The notes beneath the pieces were generated by a model. The model saw nothing but the letters and a program-made list of their open reading frames with translations. It searched no databases and was not told the DNA's origin. A stretch of 64,000 nucleotides of DNA from Rebecca billardiae RCC1528 (lineage: Eukaryota > Protista > Haptophyta), in assembly GCA_965240325.2 (NCBI GenBank), contig OZ251226.1, forward strand, positions 2,852,001 to 2,916,000. Reading direction: 5' to 3'. Of this stretch, positions 3,001-48,109 are shown one piece after another. Numbering within the stretch: position 1 is the first letter of the stretch; each line of letters starts with the position of its first letter. The position numbers and the translations under genes were made by a program.

Positions 3001-4788
3001 CGCGGAACTACCCGTTCAACAACGGCGACATCACCGTCTGCGCCTCCGTGCTGCACAACTACCTCGAGGCCTCGGCCGAGGGCGTGCCGTGGGAGGACGT
3101 GCGGTACATCTTTGGCGAGATCATGTACGGTGGGCACATCACAGACGCGTGGGACCGGCGCGTGACCAACACCTACCTCGAGGTGCTGCTCCAGCCGCCG
3201 CTGCTCGACGAGAGGGTGCGCGCCCGCGCCCGCGTGCCCGCGCGCGTCGACGCGCCGGCGCGCGCGCCGCGCCCTCTCCCCTCGCGCGCGCGCGCCCAAG
3301 CTCACCTCTAGCGCCCTGCCCGCCGCGCCGCCCGCGCGCCCGCGCGCCCGCGCGCCCGTGCGCCCGCGCGCCGTGCGCCGTGCGCCGTGCGCCGTGCGCA
3401 GGACGAGTTTGAGCTCACGCGCGGGTACAAGCCTTTGCTCGAGGGCTCGTACGCGGAGTACCGCTCGTACATCGAGAGCGGGCTGCCGGCCGAGTCGCCC
3501 GTGCTCTTCGGGCTGCACCCGAACGCCGAGATCGGCCTGCTGATCAGCATCTGCGACGCGCTCTTCGAGGCCATCTTCACGCTGCAGGGCGGCGGCGGCG
3601 GCGACGGCGGCGGCGGCGACGGCGGCGGCGCGGCCGGCGGCGCGACCAAGGAGTCGACCGTCAAGGAGATGCTGACCGACTACCAGGGCAAGCTGCCCGA
3701 GGACTTTGTGATGATCGACATCAAGGCGCGCGTGCGGGAGAAGACGCCGTACGTCGTGTGCGTCCTCCAGGTGCGGCAGCGCGCGCCACACGGCCCGCCC
3801 TCTCCGCGCGCGTTGCCCGTGCTCACGCGCTGCCGCCGCCGCCCTCGCGCGCGCCATGCCGGGCCCTGCAGGAGCTGGAGCGCATGAACGCCGTGCTCGG
3901 GCTGATGCGGCGCGAGATGAGCGAGCTCGAGCTCGGCCTCGCGGGCGCGCTTAACATCTCCGACATGATGGACACGCTGATCACCTTCCTCTTCACCAAC
4001 AAGGTGCCGCCCGGCTGGCTCAAGGTGTGCGGCCAGATCGGCCCCACCGGCACCTACAACCGCAAGACGCTCAGCGCGTGGTTCATGGACCTGCTCGTGC
4101 GGTACAAGCAGCTCAAGGAGTGGTCGGAGGACCCGCAGACCATGCCGCCGTGCGTGTGGCTTAGCGGGCTCTTCAACCCGATGGGCTACGTCACCGCCTG
4201 CCTGCAGGTGAGCGCGCTTGCGCTCGCGCACGGCGCGTCCCGCCGGCCCCCAGCCGCGCACTGCTCAGCACGCGCCGCCCACGCACACGCCGCGCGCTGT
4301 GCAGGTCACCGCGCGCGCCAAGGAGCTGCCGCTCGACGCGATGGTCGTCTCGACCGACGTGCTGCGCATCACCGCCGACCAGGTGACGGCCCAGCCCGAG
4401 GAGGGTGCGTACATCCACGGCCTCTTCATGGAGGGCGCGCGATGGGACTCGCAGCACGACACGATCGCAGACTCGCTACCGAAGGTGCGCGCGCTGCCGA
4501 TCCCCCATCGCCCGCGCGTGGTGCCACGGCGGGCGGAGCTCACGCATCCCGCGCACGACCCGCCCGCTCCACGCACGCTCGTTGCAGGAATTATTCCCGG
4601 CCATGCCCGTCATGCACGTGCGAGGCATCACGGCCGACGAGGTCCACGACGACGGCGCGTTCCAGTGCCCGGTCTTCACCACCCGGATCCGTGGGCCAAC
4701 GTTCACCTTTGCGGCGCCGCTGCGCACGATGCGCCCGGCGTACACGTGGGTGCTCGCTGGCGTGTGCTTGGTCATGCAAGCAGACTGA
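1..4788 (+). CDS. Axonemal dynein heavy chain, C-terminal part (stalk/MTBD, AAA5, AAA6, C-terminal domain); 5' end lies outside the window. Exons <1-3215, 3402-3770, 3872-4207, 4305-4484, 4588-4788
   Basis: Dynein motifs NENLPSDRVSVENG, RWPLMIDPQLQG, LYLQTKLSNPHYPPEIQAETTLINF, SMGQGQE, GGWVFLQNIHL, YIFGEIMYGGHITD, LFGLHPNAEIG, WLSGLFNP, GAYIHGLFMEGARWD. Four GT-AG introns restore a continuous frame. Confidence 0.97.
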
Positions 4789-4960
4789 TCAGCATCATCA
4801 GTGATCAGACAGATAGAATTAATCAGCAGGCGGGCTCTCAGACGCGACGTAAATATTACGCTATATGATGATGACGACCGCCGCGAGTTCCGCGGTCGTC
4901 CCCTTCCGTCAGAACCAACGTAGTTGGAGGCCCGCGCGGTGCAGCTGATAGTGAATAATT

Positions 4961-6928
4961 TAGGTGGGTCCCTCCCAACTGGGGCGATATTCTGGCGCAC
5001 TCAGAATGACGTCCTAGATTTTGTCTCTCACCCAGAATCGACGCTATATAAATGCGTCCCATCGGGGCGGAGCAAAAGTTTCGACCTCAAAACCTACTCC
5101 GCGTGCCGTCGCGCGGCCGAGCGCGCGCGCGCCGCGCGAGTAGTGTCACATAGAGATTTTGCGAAGCGTTACTTCATGGTTATGGTGGCTAGATGGCGAC
5201 ATGCGATCGGAATTACTTATTGACAACCGTTGACACCCGACCGAACCATTTTATGAAGCAAAGAGTGGGGCTCTATGCTATTGCTGTGCGCTGATACCTC
5301 CAACAAACTACTCAGCAAGATCGAGCATATTACCCACTTCGTATATAGCCACTTACCCGTATATACTATGGGGTTTACCCACTTTAATATTGACCGTGGA
5401 TGCGGTTCATTATATATTCAAATTCGTTCCGACATGTGGGTACGTTTGTTGGGTCATCGAATAGGCGCCGAGCGACGCGAACACAGGCAACCCGGGCCGC
5501 AACCGGACTGCTTGCGAGTGGCAGCAGTGTTTGTGGCGGGCTGCGTGCCGAGGCACACACCATCGCCCGCCACCGAGCATGCCACCGTCGTCACACGGGA
5601 GCCCTCCGCCGTCGAGGCTGGACTATCAGCCAACGCCACCGCCGGAGCTTGCCGCGTTTGGCGGCTTCCGTGCTCGTACTCCGCGTGTCACCGGTCGTCG
5701 TATGCCCACCCGCGTGAGGCCGCCACCAGTCCATGACTACCGCAGCTGCAGCCCATGCCGCCGACGATGCCTCCTACCATCTTCTCGCCAGGCAGCAATA
5801 CGATAGGTTCACCGACGCTGCTGCTAGGCTGAGAGCACTCAGCCAGTTGGCCGGCGAGACGTCAGATGGTTGAGAGCTGCTGGCCTAGCCATCACGTTGC
5901 GGCTTCCGCTCGCTCAAGTACACCCAACGTGACGACGAGAACGTGCCGGGCAATCATCAGACATGCGTCTGAGGGGTCCACTACGCCTAGCCGTAGAGTT
6001 GCTGAGTACGAGTCTTCGCAGACCACAAGCGGAACGAGTGGGACCACCCAATGGCAGGAGCAACAGCGTGGGGTGGCACTCGCGCCTGTCAACGCGACCG
6101 CGTTCTGTCAAAAATGGACCCATATCCTGCGACCACCCTCGAGCACCGCATACTATGCCCACACTCGGCATAGGGAAGGATCGCTGAGCGCCTGCTGCCG
6201 CTGTCAAAGGCCCTGCTGATCTTCCTGGCGCTGGATCGTGCACACGGATGGCAAGTCGGCGTGCTCGCCGCACATCGCGGCGGCTTCTCAGCATCCCAAG
6301 TCCTCAGTGCACCCATCCTAGGCCTGCTGGTCGATGATTGGTACCAACCCCCACCAAACACGCCCTCTCGGAAGTCGCCAATCGCTTACATGGCTCCCCG
6401 AGAGCCCGGGGCTGGCTGTCGTGCGTTCTCACGAGCAGCTTGCGCACAGCCCAAATGTCACCTTCACGGTGCGTTGAGCTGCTCAAGATGGCGGGAGCGT
6501 CAAGAGCATGCCCGTGCACGACACTGACCCATGCCTCCCGTCGCCTGACCCGCATGTGGCAAAAACTGACCCTGCTCGAAGGCACGGGTCGAACACCCGC
6601 CGATCGATTCAAGTTGTCTGTACGCGTCTAGCCGGGCGAGAGTCAAACATGCGGGCACGTGCCAGGCGGGGGATGTGTGACCACGGATCCCATCCGTGAG
6701 CACGCGCAAAGCGCTGGAGCGCGCGATAGGTGTTGGCTGTGGTCTACCCGACACACGGCGGCTCGGTCGCGCTGGAGAGGCGCTCCGACATCGTCGGGAG
6801 CGTTCAGATCGGACCTCGGCCGGCGGCCCGGCGATTTTCCCGAGCCGCGCCCGCGCGAAAAGAAATCAGGCCAGAAAACCCGGCGTAAATGTCAAAAGAC
6901 TGCTGGAAAATCGCCAGGGACCCACCTA
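4961..6928. mobile_element. Putative non-autonomous TIR DNA transposon (~1.97 kb)
   Basis: taggtgggtccct (4961-4973) is the exact reverse complement of agggacccaccta (6916-6928). A ggcgat(a/t)ttc motif continues the match after an indel. TA at both outer ends, lower-GC interior, no recognisable ORF. Confidence 0.55.
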
Positions 6929-7115
6929 TAAGTGATACGTGGCCATATTGATATTCCCATAACGTCCTGCCACCCGCTCCGTCACGGCGCACTGCATGAC
7001 TGCAGCGCTTCGCCGGCTCGCCGCCGCGTCGATGCCGAGTGAGTGAGTGCAACGCTGCAATAATAAGGGACAGACAAGCGCAGGGGCGCGGCCAGTGTAT
7101 AACGATATATATGAT

Positions 7116-9076
7116 TAAACTTTTCTGAGGATAGCGCACCAGCAATTTCCCTTGACCGCCATCCGGGCCGAAGTGGCGCAAAATGGCGGTTGCCCCGTTT
7201 GGGCGCCCTTCCGCGCCTTCGAGCGGCTCGTGCGCGTCGGGAAGTGCGCCGAAGCGTATCCGGAGCATGCTCCATCGACGCGTCGCACTGCCGGGCCCTC
7301 GCATGCCAGCCCACGCCGACGTCTGAGTGCGCCTCGCCGCGCACGGTACAGCTTGACGGTACACGGCACGATTCGGCCGCGAGCAGCCTCGTGCGCGCGA
7401 CCGAGCCAGAGGTGGTCGCCGAGAGTAGCACGAGTGGCGGCACACGCGCGGGCCTGATCGTTGCCGAATATCTGACGCACCAATCGACCTCGCCCAGCGC
7501 CATCTGCTCGTTTGCGCACGTGTCGGAAAGAATGCGCAGCTGCCTGCAAACGCCGAGCGCGCAGATGAGGCGTGGGCGAGCGAAGGGGCGGCGAGGGCCG
7601 GCGCGTGCGCGCGCGTAAATTCGAGCCTCCCCATACGCATCGAAACACACCGCGCTCGCTCGTCGAGCTGCGCACGGGTATCGGTGCGCGCGCGCCAACG
7701 CGGCGCGCCGTGAACGCGCCCGGCGAATGCACACCTGCTCGCGCGCGCACGCGCGCGTGATGGACCGAGGAGGTCGCGCGAGCATGCGCGATGTGTCTGG
7801 ATGGAGCGTGTAGGAGGTGGAGGCTGCGCTCCGCACGCGCTCCGCCACCGTGCACCGCGCTGCCCCTCGTCCACGCGATCGCCGCCGAGCCCAGATTCAA
7901 ACGCGCGCGAGCCCGCGAGCGCGCCTCCGAGCAGCGCTTGCAGCAATCGTGTCGAAGGCTTGGCGAGAGGCAGATGTGCATGGCAAGTAGCGCAATGGGG
8001 GTGCCCATCACGCACACACACCCGCGCACGCTCGCCGCACCACCTCGTCGTGCCCACGTTCAGCGCGCGGGGCGCACTTTGCGCCTCGAGCAGCTGCCGA
8101 GCTGCTCCCGCGCGCGGCGCGCGCGGCGAGTAGAACTCAGCCAATGGTCCGAGGGCGAGCCGGCCGAGCGTCGTGCGTGACGCACATGGACCTGGTGCAA
8201 CGCCGCGTACCACTCGCAGCCACCATCGCGCCCGTACCAGCGAGCTGTGGCCGCCGCCGACACCCCAAAGCAGCCCAGCCGTCAGCGCGCGACAGCCGGC
8301 GAGCGCGCGACGCGCGCGTGCACCACCGTGATGAGCACGGATGAGCGCGCGCGCCCGTGTCGTAGCTCAGGTGGGGTCCCCCGATCGCACGCACCACCGC
8401 GCTGCCACGCCTTCGACCATCTTGTGTCACCACGCGGGCACACGCCGGGCAGGCGGCGGGGGCAGCCCGCTCGGCAAACGGTCAGCGCGCAGCGAGGATG
8501 GAGTCCGGCGAGGGGCGACCGGAGTGTCCGGCGCGACGGAGGTGGTCCACGCCGTGGTCGCCGACGCGATCCTCACCACCTCCGAGGCCGTGGTGGCCGC
8601 CCGGGAGAAGGAATGCTCCCAGTCGCACCCTTTGCAGTGCTCCTTTGCGCGTGCACGCAACGGCGAGGAGCGGAAGCGTTAGAGGGCACTTTTTGTGCAG
8701 TTCAGGCGTTCTTTCCCCAAAATGTAGAATGCGCGGAGAAGTGCCCTCTAACGATTTTCGTGTGCAGCCGTGCCGCGCGCGCGAGGAAGGCCACATGCGG
8801 CTCCTTGCACATCTGCTGCAGATCGGCTCGTGCTCGGCGAGCGCGGCGAGGAGGAAGGTGCGCGCTCGCGAGCTGGCGCACCTGGGAGACCTCGCGGCCT
8901 CCGAGCAGAAAGAGCGCGTCGAGCGCAACGCCGCAGGTCGCACGGTCGCGATCTCGCGAGAGCGGTGGTGCGAGGGCGGGCCTCGCCATCGCGCGTTTCT
9001 GCGTCCAAACGCGGCCTCCGTAAAATCCGGATGGCGGTCAAGGGATTTTGCTGGTGCGCTATCCTCAGAAAAGTTT

Positions 9077-9077
<1 letters not shown>
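7116..9077. mobile_element. TIR DNA transposon derivative (~1.96 kb) with 51-bp TIRs
   Basis: 7116-7166 taaacttttctgaggatagcgcaccagcaatttcccttgaccgccatccgg matches the reverse complement of 9027-9077 with 2 mismatches. TA at both outer ends; the right end abuts a (CA)n(TA)n tract. Confidence 0.85.
8677..8753. repeat. 77-bp mini inverted-repeat element (15-bp perfect IR) nested in the 7116-9077 element
   Basis: cgttagagggcactt (8677-8691) / aagtgccctctaacg (8739-8753), enclosing an AT-richer spacer. Confidence 0.6.

Positions 9078-9121
<44 letters not shown>
9078..9121. repeat. (CA)n(TA)n microsatellite
   Basis: Direct reading. Confidence 0.95.
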
Positions 9122-9298
9122 ACGACGTGGTGTGCAACGGGCAAGCGTCAGGCTCAGAGTGCAGCAGACACATATAGAATGCGTCCGCGCCTTCCGACCA
9201 GGTCAGGCAGTGCGCCACCCGCAGCCCTGCCCCCCTACGGGAGCGGGGGCGGGATGGAGCACCGCCTCGGCCTGGGGCACGCGGCGGCGACGGCAGAA

Positions 9299-10217: not shown

Positions 10218-11043
10218 CACACATATATGTGGCGTTATAGGGAACCTATAACTGAGTGTCTATGAGCGACGCCAAGAATCCGGCTCGCACCGTCGCACGG
10301 CGTCAGGCACGGCATTCCTGCGTTCATCCCGCGCGCACCGCCGCGCGCAGGAGTCCTGGTGCGCTGCCAATCTGGCCCACAGTGGCGCACCTGCAGGACT
10401 CGGTTGGTTACCGCTCACAATCATCGGATCGATCAGGCTTCGCTCTCGGGGGCGCCATGGGGCTGCTCACGACGAAGGCGCCGAGCTGGGCAAGGGAATC
10501 GCCTGCATCGGGCACTGCCGGGTGCACGCTCCGCTGCAGGAGGTGCACCGCAGTCGCCGCAGCCCCTCTGCTCGGTAAGGTCGCTGGCTGTCTGTGTGGC
10601 CCGGCTCCCCGCCTGATCGTTCGGCGGCGCGACGTCATCATCTGTCTTCGCCGCGTCGCCCCTCATGCAATGGTCTCTTGCTCTCGCCGCTGTCGCGTCA
10701 ACCCGCGCACGCTTCATCGTTTGCCCGCCCGCCCACCCTCGGCGGCTCGGCCTCTGGCGAATATGGAAGCACTGCAGTGTCAGCGAGCCATCAGCCTTAA
10801 TCGACCTTGCTCAGTGACTGACGACTCGCGGGCGCCCTCTCGACCTCGGGCAGCAGCTCAACCGCCACGCCGCTGCCAGCGCCCGCTGTCGTTCGTTGCT
10901 CAAATCCCAACATAGCTAACCTGATCGTTCCATGATTGATCATCGTGGTCGTCTACTCCACGACGCCGCGCGCCGCGACCATCCAGCTCTAGAGTCCATT
11001 CGTACCCGACGCCTTGTACGAGCCGGGCATGGCGGAGTGGCTA

Positions 11044-11046
<3 letters not shown>

Positions 11047-11112
<66 letters not shown>
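11047..11112. repeat. (TA)n microsatellite
   Basis: Direct reading. Confidence 0.95.
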
Positions 11113-11147
11113 CGTCTATAATTCCCGCACGGATGATGCGCCGTGAT

Positions 11148-44513: not shown

Positions 44514-44822
44514 CTAGTGCGATGGAGGGCGAAGCCAATTCTCAACAAACGGCACTGGCAGATGCATCGCCCATGCTGTCAGGGTGGCGACGTTGGTGAG
44601 CAGGAGAAAGCATGCGAGCCAGCTCGACACCGACCAACGATTGTCCTCATCGTCCTCCTCCTCAGCATTTTCCAGCTGCTGCGTGCGATCGGTACTTCTC
44701 GGCGGGGCCGGTGCTGATGCCGTCAGCAAAGGGCTTGCAAACTGCGCGAGCGATCCGGAGCCGTCGACGGTGCCACGACTCCGGGCCACGTGCAGCCGCA
44801 GCCGGTCGAGCGCAGTAGCCAT
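44514..44822 (-). CDS. Small hypothetical protein with C-terminal transmembrane segment
   Basis: Acidic patch (EEEDDED) followed by WSVSSWLACFLLLTNVATLTAWAM. Confidence 0.5.
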   Translation of the reverse strand: MATALDRLRLHVARSRGTVDGSGSLAQFASPLLTASAPAPPRSTDRTQQLENAEEEDDEDNRWSVSSWLACFLLLTNVATLTAWAMHLPVPFVENWLRPPSH

Positions 44823-45920
44823 TACCGAAGGACGCACCCGGCCGAGCCGGTGGGCGTGGCTTGCACGTACAGGCTGGTCTCACCAAGAACTTCCCGAGCG
44901 CTGCCGACGTGTCCGCGCTCGCGGCGGGCGAGCACGGGGAATCGGCTGAGTACGATCGCTCGCATCGTGGGTCTAGTCCCCAACAAAATTGTCCGCGGAG
45001 CCGCGCGCGTCGCTCACCTCGTGCCCGGCGCTCCGCCGCGGAGGCGCCGTCACAGTGGTTTTCACAGTGGGCCGAGCAGTCTGAAGTGGCGCTGAACTGA
45101 GGTTTCGTCGGGGTTTCCGCAGTCCGGCGGGCTTCTGCCACTTCGGACGCCCAGGCGGCATCCATCACCACGAGGTCGGCCACGCGCGGACCTGGCCCGC
45201 GCGGAGGCGGAGCATGGCGCACTGCTTGATGACTGCGCCCGCGCGAGCCGTTCCATGATCGCTGTGGTTACAGCCAAAGCCCCTGCCTCTGTTGGTGGGA
45301 CCTCGCCAGATGCACTTGTCACTTGCGCGCCGCTCGAACGGCTCCGAACGAACACGACGAGCACATTGCACTTCGTCGCAGTTGGCTCACTCGCAGCAGG
45401 TATTCGAATCTGTCGCAGTGGAAGCGGGGGGTGCGAGAGCCTACGTACGTCTGTCAAGGGCAGCCGCACGCTTCAACATTGCGAAGGAGTTCCGCCCTGA
45501 ACAGTGCGGCGGCAAGGCGGGTTGAGTGTGCTCCAAGCAACATCGTCAGGCACTGATACAGGTGGGGAGGCGCAGGAAGGACGTTGCAACGAGCGCGATG
45601 AGGCCCACATACCTCGACAGCATGGGAGAGACGCGCTGTGGGACATGAAGACACCTGTCACTCATGCCAGGTCCCACGTTGACCCGCAACGCTCGGCGGC
45701 TTCTGCGGGCGAGAACAACGACGCAATGTTTCAGTGCTACAGCGAGGGTGGGGATGAGGAGAGGGGCTTGGGGTACGGGCAACCGTGTGAACAACACCAC
45801 TAGGGGTCGCACGGACCGAGATCGCGCGCCGTTCATTTTTTGCAGGGGGGTGGGGGTTTGAATCTCGACAACGGCGGGGCGGACAGAGGCGTGCGACCCC
45901 TCGTCGGAGAGCTCTCGATG

Positions 45921-47832
45921 TGCTATGTTACGGGTAACGTGGGTTTGCGAGTACGCGGCGAGCTCATGGTCCGGACCCGTCGATCGGGTCCCTCCCGCCT
46001 GTGCTCGTTTTGGGTGGCGTCACGACGCCACCCTAAACGAGCGCTCCGCGCCGCCTCGGCGGCGCGTGGGCAGCTACCACCGGCCAGTCCAATCGGACGA
46101 CAGGGCCGAGGACCCAAACGGATCGGCATGGGCTCCTCACGCCGCCGGCGCGGCACACGAGGAGCACCAGCCACCCCAATCGGGGGAGCGGAGGGCGAAT
46201 CCGGCCTCCACTCTCTCACGCCTGGCGACGACGGTGGGTCGCCCGGCGCCGATGGTGCCGTTACCGGCAGCGAGCCCTCGGTGGGGGCTCCTGGTGACGA
46301 AGACGCTGAACCGGACGACGCTGGCCCTACCGGTGCTGGCGGTCGCCTTCAGCGTGGTGCTGAGAACCGGCTACCCGGTGAACACACGCTACCGCCGCGA
46401 GCGCACAACGCAAACGCACGTGGGCTCGCAGTGGACGAGGCGGTACTGGAGGATCGCCTGGGGCGAATGGAATCGCGACTACGGGAGTTGGAGTCGACGA
46501 ACGAGGAGCTGCGACAGGCGAACGAGCGGCTCTCGGCGGCGGCTACCAGGCACGACGAGGACGCGCGGCGTCTGGATCCTTCGACGAATCGGCGTTTTTG
46601 TCGCTTCGTTGATGGGAATCCGGGCCGCGTGGACGCCGGAGTGGACCCTCGCGACCGGACTGTCCCACGGCTGATGGTGCCAGATACCGACGCAGCTCGG
46701 AACCTATGGGTGATGGGACGCGACTACTCGCGCCAATCGGCGCTTTTCAAGGGGTACATTTACTCCAACGCGGTGGAATACTACCTGTACAACGTGGCCG
46801 GTACGATCCAATATCTGCTGGACAGCTTCGGTCGCAACGACCTCGATTCTGAGGAGCTCGAAATCGAGCTCGAAGCTTGCTGGAATACCATCGATAAGCT
46901 TCTGGAAATCACTGGCTCCGTCAAAGCGGTACCTATCCTTCGCTCGCGATTCGCTGCAAACATGCAGCCTGGCGACGAGCAGCACGCTGCGTATGCGCTA
47001 CGCGCCAAGCAGATCGAGGATCTGCACCGCCCGGCTCTCCCGGAGATCTCTCCGCAAGTGGACGAGATCCTGCGCGCCGCCGATCGGGCGGTCGACGCTG
47101 CCGTGGCTAAGCAGCAGGCTGCTGCGGCCGCCCTCGCGCGCACGGTGAAGCCGACCAAGCTTCCGGTGCAACCGCTGGGGCGGCAGCCGCCTGGTCCCCC
47201 GGGGACCACCCCCGATGTCCACAAGGACCGACCCGTCGGCAGAGACCGACCTGCAGGGGCGACTGCCCCACGTGCGGGCACCGCCCGCCCCGCGCCGCCG
47301 CGCGACCACGCGCGAGCCGCTCACGCCGAACTGGACGAGGACAACCACACGTCCGACGAGTAACGATGCCGACGTCGACGTCGACATCGCCCGGATGGCG
47401 ATCAACGCCAGTCCGCTCCCCACAGCCGCACGCTCGGCTGGTACGGCATCCTGCATGCCCCGCCGCTGTTGGCCATCCTCGGCGCGCACCCGTGCTCTTT
47501 GGTGGCAAATCATCGAGCCGTGACTCTTAGCAAATGCTATGTTACGGGTAACGTGGGTTTGCGAGTACGCGGCGAGCTCATGGTCCGGACCCGTCGATCG
47601 GGTCCCTCCCGCCTGTGCTCGTTTTGGGTGGCGTCACGACGCCACCCTAACCCACCACGCCCCCCCCTGATGCTCGTTTTGGAGTGGGGGCCCGCAGCGA
47701 CCGCACCCACTGGGCGTGGATCAGCCGCGGACCGACGCTGAGGGCCAGCCGGCCCCATCTGGGACTGCTGCCCCTCTGTCTGATGATTAACGTAGCTGCC
47801 TGGCAAATCATCGAGCCGTGACTCTTAGCAAA
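45921..47832 (+). mobile_element. Split-direct-repeat element (PAT/Ngaro/TOC1-like tyrosine-recombinase retrotransposon derivative), non-autonomous
   Basis: A1 45921-46036 = A2 47535-47650 (116 bp); B1 47503-47534 = B2 47801-47832 (32 bp); B1 directly abuts A2; single internal ORF. Confidence 0.82.
46128..47363 (+). CDS. Gag-like ORF of the split-direct-repeat element (411 aa)
   Basis: Intronless, lower GC3 than host genes; disordered N-terminus, coiled coil (LEDRLGRMESRLRELESTNEELRQANERL), helical core, Pro/Arg-rich tail. The gag call rests on position, not homology. Confidence 0.65.
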   Translation: MGSSRRRRGTRGAPATPIGGAEGESGLHSLTPGDDGGSPGADGAVTGSEPSVGAPGDEDAEPDDAGPTGAGGRLQRGAENRLPGEHTLPPRAHNANARGLAVDEAVLEDRLGRMESRLRELESTNEELRQANERLSAAATRHDEDARRLDPSTNRRFCRFVDGNPGRVDAGVDPRDRTVPRLMVPDTDAARNLWVMGRDYSRQSALFKGYIYSNAVEYYLYNVAGTIQYLLDSFGRNDLDSEELEIELEACWNTIDKLLEITGSVKAVPILRSRFAANMQPGDEQHAAYALRAKQIEDLHRPALPEISPQVDEILRAADRAVDAAVAKQQAAAAALARTVKPTKLPVQPLGRQPPGPPGTTPDVHKDRPVGRDRPAGATAPRAGTARPAPPRDHARAAHAELDEDNHTSDE

Positions 47833-48109
47833 CGGCCGATTTAATGGCGCCATCGAGAATTTTCCGCAGACGCAGTGGGACTGAAAAAACAAATCCAAAG
47901 CCTCGGGAAGTTTTTGTTGAGACCAGCCTGTACTGATGCGAAGCGGCACCGCTTCAGCGGGTTGGCGCGCGCCCGCCATCTCATGAGAACGACTGACGAA
48001 ATCGAATATGTTTTCGCGCCCGATTCGCCTGCCCACGAGGCTGCTGACCACGTCGTGGGCAGCCGTCCTCGTCAGCCGGCGCACCGGTCCTACGCGCGCG
48101 TCAGTCGTC

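Follow-up and report, generated by a model that had tools for sequence, protein, structure and literature searches.

From the combined analyses it was concluded that a 1912-bp unit at positions 45921-47832 of the window (the whole stretch of 64,000 nt that was analysed, C8:2852001-2916000) was probably a non-autonomous tyrosine-recombinase (YR) retroelement of the DIRS order with the Ngaro/PAT layout, for which RT/RNase H and the recombinase would be supplied in trans. As the unit encoded no enzymes, only one orphan helical protein, it was a rather commonplace parasite of other elements. Less ordinary were the orphan ORF that it had retained and the absence of a master with shared ends.

Architecture of the element

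The order of the unit was A1-ORF-B1A2-spacer-B2. Repeat A1 (45921-46036, forward strand), which formed the left end and started with TGCTATGTTACGGGTAAC, was a 100% match to the 116-nt repeat A2 (47535-47650, forward strand) in both the repeat search and blastn. Repeat B1 (47503-47534, forward strand; 32 nt, ending in CTCTTAGCAAA) was likewise a 100% match to B2 (47801-47832, forward strand; 32 nt), which formed the right end. B1 adjoined A2 directly, and the B1-A2 fusion represented a stored junction of the 3' end of the element to its 5' end. A unique spacer of 150 bp (47651-47800, forward strand) lay between A2 and B2, and an ORF of 411 aa occupied positions 46128-47363 of the forward strand. 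The first-pass annotation had described the repeat copies as identical by eye and B1 as fused to A2 with 150 bp before B2; the former was confirmed for both pairs by the repeat search and blastn, and the latter by the coordinates (47503-47650 and 47651-47800).

The element termini were TGCT...GCAAA. The start, TGCTATG, and the end, TTAGCAAA, were sharp in all three genomic copies described below, and both the 5' boundary of A1 and the 3' boundary of B2 were equally sharp when compared with the empty site. The split direct repeats followed the A1-internal-B1A2-B2 arrangement of the Ngaro/PAT-like members of the DIRS order, with a 150-bp spacer preceding B2. The absence of a TSD together with this pattern is diagnostic of SDR-type DIRS elements, and further split-repeat configurations exist (PMC8969392). 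The same SDR features are found in VIPER, Ngaro and PAT-like elements, SIRE being an example of a derivative that lacks pol (PMC6681497).

Insertion site and empty-site comparison

The window copy interrupted a host TIR element, which was not part of it. The left part of the host (44867-45920) and its right part (47833-47933), the latter matching uninterrupted copies, belonged to a TA-flanked element with the ends CAGGCTGG...CCAGCCTG, terminal inverted repeats of 32 bp and a length of ~1155 bp when uninterrupted. At least 13 near-identical uninterrupted copies were present elsewhere in the genome and represented empty sites. Three of these were aligned to both junctions of the window copy. The empty site read GAGCTCTCGATG directly followed by CGGCCGATTTAATGG, and in the occupied site the same two sequences bordered an insert running from TGCTATGTT to CTCTTAGCAAA. 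At the level of single bases, CTCGATG was joined to CGGCCGATT in the empty site, and in the window CTCGATG was followed by TGCTATG...TTAGCAAA and then by CGGCCGATT. The insertion therefore comprised exactly positions 45921-47832 (1912 bp), with no TSD and no target bases lost.

The remaining two targets, CACTTT^CCCGGT and TTGAAC^CTCCAT, also lacked a TSD, as judged by flank comparison. Insertion without a TSD, as in the DIRS order, was hence observed from the empty site and from the flanks of all three copies, and the earlier claim that no TSD was present held for the window copy against its empty site as well as for the C36 and C11 copies. The three target junctions were G^C, T^C and C^C, and none of them was a microsatellite. 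No common target motif was obvious across the three sites except a C on the 3' side, which was not significant at n = 3.

Copies in the genome

The assembly was eukaryotic and consisted of 72 Mb in 41 contigs with a GC content of ~65%. Contig C40 was mitochondrial, and the cox1 gene on it carried group II introns. For a conserved MOZ/SAS acetyltransferase the search yielded only distant relatives, the best identities being ~50%.

The 1912-bp unit was found by blastn three times in the 72-Mb genome, on three different contigs and with unrelated flanks. Besides the window copy on C8, a second copy was located at C36:176152-178064 and a third on the reverse strand at C11:883381-885226, with its B2 at C11:881065-881146. 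Apart from a 2234-bp foreign insertion that split the spacer of the C11 copy and an 11-bp expansion of its B2, the three copies differed by one 1-bp indel and one dinucleotide. The indel was a T insertion in the C36 copy, which frameshifted the ORF near codon 107; the dinucleotide (AG/GT at 46504-46505) distinguished the C8 copy from the C36 and C11 copies. Aside from the expanded B2, the A and B pairs were identical within each copy. The ORF was therefore uninterrupted in the C8 and C11 copies, two of the three. The element was recently mobile, as near-identical copies resided at unrelated sites.

The first 26 nt of A, searched as a pattern with up to 3 mismatches, had exactly seven occurrences in the genome: each copy accounted for two, and the seventh was a relic at C15:1916985-1917010. 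The relic was a decayed, isolated A-like fragment of 90 nt (81%) that adjoined another repeat family.

Single-copy status, which the first-pass annotation had named, together with the lack of a YR/RT-bearing relative, as a reason to abandon its reading, was not observed. Its proposal of a young non-autonomous family agreed with the three near-identical copies and with their lack of RT, RNase H and YR. The uninterrupted ORF1 that it had reported was true of two copies; in the C36 copy the frame was broken by the 1-bp insertion.

The 411-aa ORF product

The ORF product had a basic, low-complexity N-terminus and a Pro/Arg-rich tail. A coiled coil was located at aa 104-148 (nt 46437-46571), where the structural model showed a confident long helix, and a conserved helical domain at aa 183-394 (nt 46674-47309), the helical part of which spanned ~aa 187-339 in AlphaFold2. 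Overall, the protein was predicted to be all-helical with disordered basic or Pro-rich ends, although the AlphaFold2 models were poor (pLDDT of 49 over the full length and 62 over the domain alone).

When 1.84 billion representative proteins were searched in full with HMMER, the ORF had just two relatives among them, P0001 (224 aa) and P0002 (128 aa); each was a transcript from MMETSP, a collection of marine-protist transcriptomes. A look-up of encoding contigs gave no record for the ORF or for these relatives. P0001 shared 47% identity with the ORF over aa 183-394 (E 3e-36), began at a Met aligned with M183 of the ORF and had a 19-residue identical stretch, EILRAADRAVDAAVAKQQA, in common with it. 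Because of these transcript relatives the ORF was judged, on sequence grounds, to be a real, partly conserved gene. The GC distribution by codon position was coding-like, with a GC3 of 0.71; for two other genes of the window, calpain and MOZ/SAS, the values were 0.92-0.95. No paralogue was found in its own genome beyond the three copies.

The other searches with the ORF gave little. Neither a PDB profile search nor a word-based search, which covered 5.8 billion protein clusters, returned a match; an ESM Atlas search by features returned nothing informative, and PHROGs returned one sub-threshold match only. The Pfam matches were confined to coiled coils, all of them sub-threshold, and the alternative frames gave none. 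Thus, no RT, RNase H, integrase or recombinase was detected by Pfam in the ORF or in alternative frames, nor was RVT_1 found at any of the three copies among the genome matches listed. The element was accordingly found to encode neither RT/RNase H nor a tyrosine recombinase, as had been supposed from the first reading of the sequence.

The description of the ORF as gag-like was not supported. No Gag, capsid or CCHC zinc-knuckle family was recognised by sequence (Pfam, PDB profile search), and a Foldseek comparison of the weak domain model (pLDDT 62) with the PDB, together with an atlas shape search, returned generic helical bundles only. The profile and structure searches that had been suggested for the ORF hence provided a predicted helical coiled coil but no informative family or fold match. 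The ORF is an orphan that owes the gag-like label solely to its position.

Hairpins and RNA structure of repeat A

Two hairpins had been noticed in repeat A, and both were present. Hairpin 1 (45973-45991, forward strand; ggacccg-tcgat-cgggtcc) was read from the sequence and also appeared in the MFE fold. Hairpin 2 in A1 (46003-46042, forward strand), detected by the repeat search and by folding, had its core at 46012-46033 (gggtggcgtc-ac-gacgccaccc), and its stem in A1 ran 6 nt beyond the repeat boundary. The hairpin 1 stem was kept, in a lengthened form, in the C15 relic (n = 2 only).

The RNA fold of the A1 region had an energy of -68.4 kcal/mol (z = -5.3), and none of 200 shuffles was equally good. 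The 3' block B1A2-spacer-B2 was unusually structured as well (z = -4.5). A search of positions 44800-48100 against Rfam gave no match.

A resident RT-RNaseH-recombinase family and the search for a partner

The Phage_integrase matches in the genome all belonged to one family with five copies, on C33, C18, C23, C12 and C38, which were ~99% alike. In L047 an element of this autonomous family occupied positions 3889-9269 (5381 bp). Its A1 (3889-4169, 281 nt) was a 100% match to A2 (8467-8747), which was adjoined by B1 (8203-8466, 264 nt); B1 in turn was a 100% match to B2 (9006-9269), preceded by a spacer of 258 bp. The family was very young. It inserted in (TA)n/(TG)n microsatellites.

The resident pol contained a nearly invariant Y141 followed by the invariant T142-D143-D144, which was read as an RT motif-C-like YTDD, as well as invariant RNase-H-like columns D...E...D...D and a C-terminal tyrosine-recombinase (Phage_integrase) domain. 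Its metagenomic homologues (28-39% identity) carried PF00589; three of them also carried PF00145, a cytosine methylase domain typical of DIRS/PAT-like elements, and one homologue reached RVT_1 at E 0.003. A PDB profile search of the pol gave weak matches to XerD and to the Ty3 RT/RNase H. The 5' part of pol was missing from the L046 and L047 copies, and the C33 copy had an open frame of 1317 codons. In the Logan contig L072, a relative at 96% was represented by its 5' part, together with an 849-aa upstream gene. Overall, 55 RVT_1 matches were recorded in the genome, including an RT + RT_RNaseH family of four copies (the one in L022).

The architecture of the window element was identical to that of the resident family, including a spacer before B2 (150 and 258 bp, respectively), and both were very young. 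Further, a few bases into repeat A each carried a short palindrome, GTTACGGGTAAC in the window element and GTTATAAC..GTTATAAC in the resident family. In contrast, blastn revealed no similarity between the two in A, B or the body. The ORF was similar neither to the ORFs of the resident family nor to the 849-aa gene of L072 (BLASTP, tblastn), and hhalign against the resident pol gave nothing. Unlike the A repeat of the window element, the resident A was not unusually structured.

No RT- or YR-bearing element with shared A or B repeats was found by the 26-mer pattern in the genome or by blastn, most RT loci being covered with 1.5-kb flanks only. Consequently, no resident autonomous master was seen to have termini in common with the window element, as VIPER has with SIRE. 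The BLASTN search recommended in the first-pass annotation thus succeeded for further copies but not for an RT-RH-YR partner with common repeats, and the YR/RT-bearing relative on which its reading depended was represented by a resident RT-RH-YR family of the same layout, with no sequence in common. Since the resident family targets microsatellites and the window element at its three sites did not, the recombinase may be supplied by another family, and the one recombinase family detected may not be the helper of the window element.

Proposed mechanism and alternative explanations

It was proposed that the element would be transcribed from A1 through B2 and that the RNA would be copied by RT/RNase H supplied in trans. 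The internal B1A2 junction would then template the joining of the ends to give a closed circle, and a trans-supplied tyrosine recombinase would join the B-A closure to the chromosome, leaving no TSD. The ORF product might be an element-specific ORF1-type protein that multimerises via its coiled coil and binds the RNA or DNA of its own element, by which a cis-preference would arise. The strongly structured A repeat with its hairpins would be a likely recognition or priming signal.

A bolder version was also considered, in which an ORF-bearing element was recently amplified although no master in the genome has its ends. Either an unrelated YR retroelement would cross-mobilise it, recognising structural signals (the hairpins of A) and not a common sequence, or the orphan protein would be a new, element-specific mobility factor of YR retroelements. 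Such an outcome was regarded as rather unlikely.

It was judged unlikely, too, that the element moves as a DNA-only circle, excised and re-integrated as dsDNA by a host- or TE-encoded tyrosine recombinase in a Crypton-like manner and with no reverse transcription. The split repeats would then be a by-product of recombination between two B-A junctions. The precise, TSD-less insertion and the lack of RT in the element are what such a process would produce; however, the three near-identical copies would rather suit copy-and-paste, and the only other elements here shown to have the exact layout encode RT, RNase H and recombinase. To our knowledge, Cryptons have not been described with split direct repeats. 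A Crypton has its own tyrosine recombinase and no terminal repeats, and the window element carried split direct repeats and no YR.

The element could also be self-sufficient, the 411-aa orphan being a new mobility enzyme or an essential integration factor that needs no related master. We considered this very unlikely. While the absence of a master with shared termini, an ORF still open in two of the three copies and the 47% conservation of part of it in a distant organism, with the identical 19-residue stretch, speak in its favour, the predicted structure of the protein was helical throughout, comprising a coiled coil and a bundle, with no match to a catalytic family, motif or fold, and one of the three equally young copies was frameshifted.

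An origin as a Helitron-like or as an LTR-derived (TRIM/LARD-type) non-autonomous element was extremely improbable. Helitrons are also TSD-less and have hairpins, but the ends TGCT...GCAAA were not of the TC...CTRR type, and the targets were G^C, T^C and C^C rather than A^T. The absence of pol would agree with a LARD or TRIM element, but no TSD of 4-6 bp and no terminal LTR pair were seen, the repeats being split. As for a local tandem duplication or an assembly artefact, raised at the outset as a possible refutation, the order A-X-B-A-Y-B could formally arise by partial tandem duplication, but the identical unit on three contigs with unrelated flanks and the empty TIR copies reduced its chances to next to nil.

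Comparison with known elements

The preferred reading, a pol-less YR retroelement mobilised in trans, was compared with known systems. In the usual drawing of Ngaro and PAT elements A2 adjoins B2, instead of which the window element has its 150-bp spacer. Split repeats, an internal B-A junction, the absence of a TSD and within-copy identity are common to the window element and the Ngaro/PAT-like elements (PMC8969392, PMC6681497). The window element differs from them in having no RT, RNase H or recombinase and in its very short repeats (116 and 32 nt).

Chlamydomonas TOC1 is pol-less and carries the terminal repeats of a YR retroelement, and the window element was likened to it. The same two features are seen in SIRE of Trypanosoma cruzi (PMC6681497). 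SIRE is built from the end sequences of VIPER (PMC6681497), whereas the ends of the window element were found in no master. Moreover, SIRE is short and non-coding, and the window element retains an ORF of 411 aa.

A parallel for the retained ORF is BARE-2, a gag-only non-autonomous LTR retrotransposon that has kept its first ORF and uses the pol of another element, as would the window element. BARE-2 is nevertheless of a different class, with LTRs, integrase and TSDs, and the ORF of the window element had no demonstrable Gag homology.

Implications

Since both the occupied site and the empty-site family were carried by the window, it offered a clean natural example of base-precise insertion without a TSD. 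With its repeats of 116 and 32 nt, two hairpins and one ORF, the element would offer a minimal substrate, 1.9 kb in length, for work on the recognition of YR retroelements and their mobilisation in trans. Its orphan ORF, part of which is conserved in the transcriptome of a distant marine protist, is a candidate for the ORF1 function of these retroelements, which is poorly understood.

Insertions associated with the copies of the element

The window copy of the split-direct-repeat element was found to interrupt a TA-flanked host element of ~1155 bp (window 44867-45920 and 47833-47933), bounded by 32-bp terminal inverted repeats that began with CAGGCTGGTCTCACCAAGAAC. At least 13 near-identical copies of this host element were spread over the genome, and it looked like a young MITE-like family of the Tc1/mariner type. 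No long ORF was noted within it. An RRM/nucleolin-like gene started at ~48112, ~180 bp downstream of the host element.

In the C11 copy, the spacer was itself interrupted by an unclassified 2234-bp insertion (L049 3148-5381, G000:C11:881147-883380), which was flanked by a duplicated GGACT and contained 24-bp tandem repeats, LTRs and TIRs being absent from it. Further members of the repeat family of this insertion were recognized in two other genomic stretches, L045 (3439-4169) and L048 (2437-2750).

Apart from the copies of the element, the only A-like sequence in the genome was an isolated relic of ~90 nt with 81% identity, located on the minus strand of contig C15 (L048 4925-5011, G000:C15:1916924-1917010) in repeat-rich surroundings. 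Hairpin 1 was kept and lengthened in the relic, and the adjacent 170 nt belonged to a different family of at least 40 copies.

Reverse transcriptase-bearing loci

The resident RT-RNaseH-tyrosine-recombinase family is young, and its copies were located in stretches L047 (3889-9269), L046 (2421-8945) and L045 (contig C33), at (TA)n/(TG)n microsatellites. Its split direct repeats comprised an A of 281 nt, a B of 264 nt and a spacer of 258 bp. The 5' part of pol was missing in the L046 and L047 copies, and the reverse transcriptase of the family was too divergent to be matched by the Pfam RVT_1 model. A repeat block, L045 1-1107, adjoined the family copies in both L045 and L046. Fragments matching this block with 91-99% identity were present at window 10229-11046, beside a (TA)n tract (11042-11120). 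The region probably represents a related element that is small or truncated.

A four-copy family (L022-L024 and L028, at C23:375967, C3:2454762, C17:946790 and C17:442416) carried a 969-aa ORF with RVT_1 and RT_RNaseH domains. Judged from the 1.5-kb flanks, it may be an LTR element of the Gypsy type or a split-repeat element lacking a recombinase. RT/maturase proteins were also encoded on G000:C40 (L021, L034), a small mitochondrial contig, by the group II introns splitting cox1.

A 96% relative of the resident tyrosine-recombinase family was found in a public sequencing run (Logan contig ERR14847148_3660, L072), together with an upstream 849-aa gene for which no Pfam match was obtained. This relative suggests that a close relative of R. 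billardiae RCC1528 has already been sequenced.
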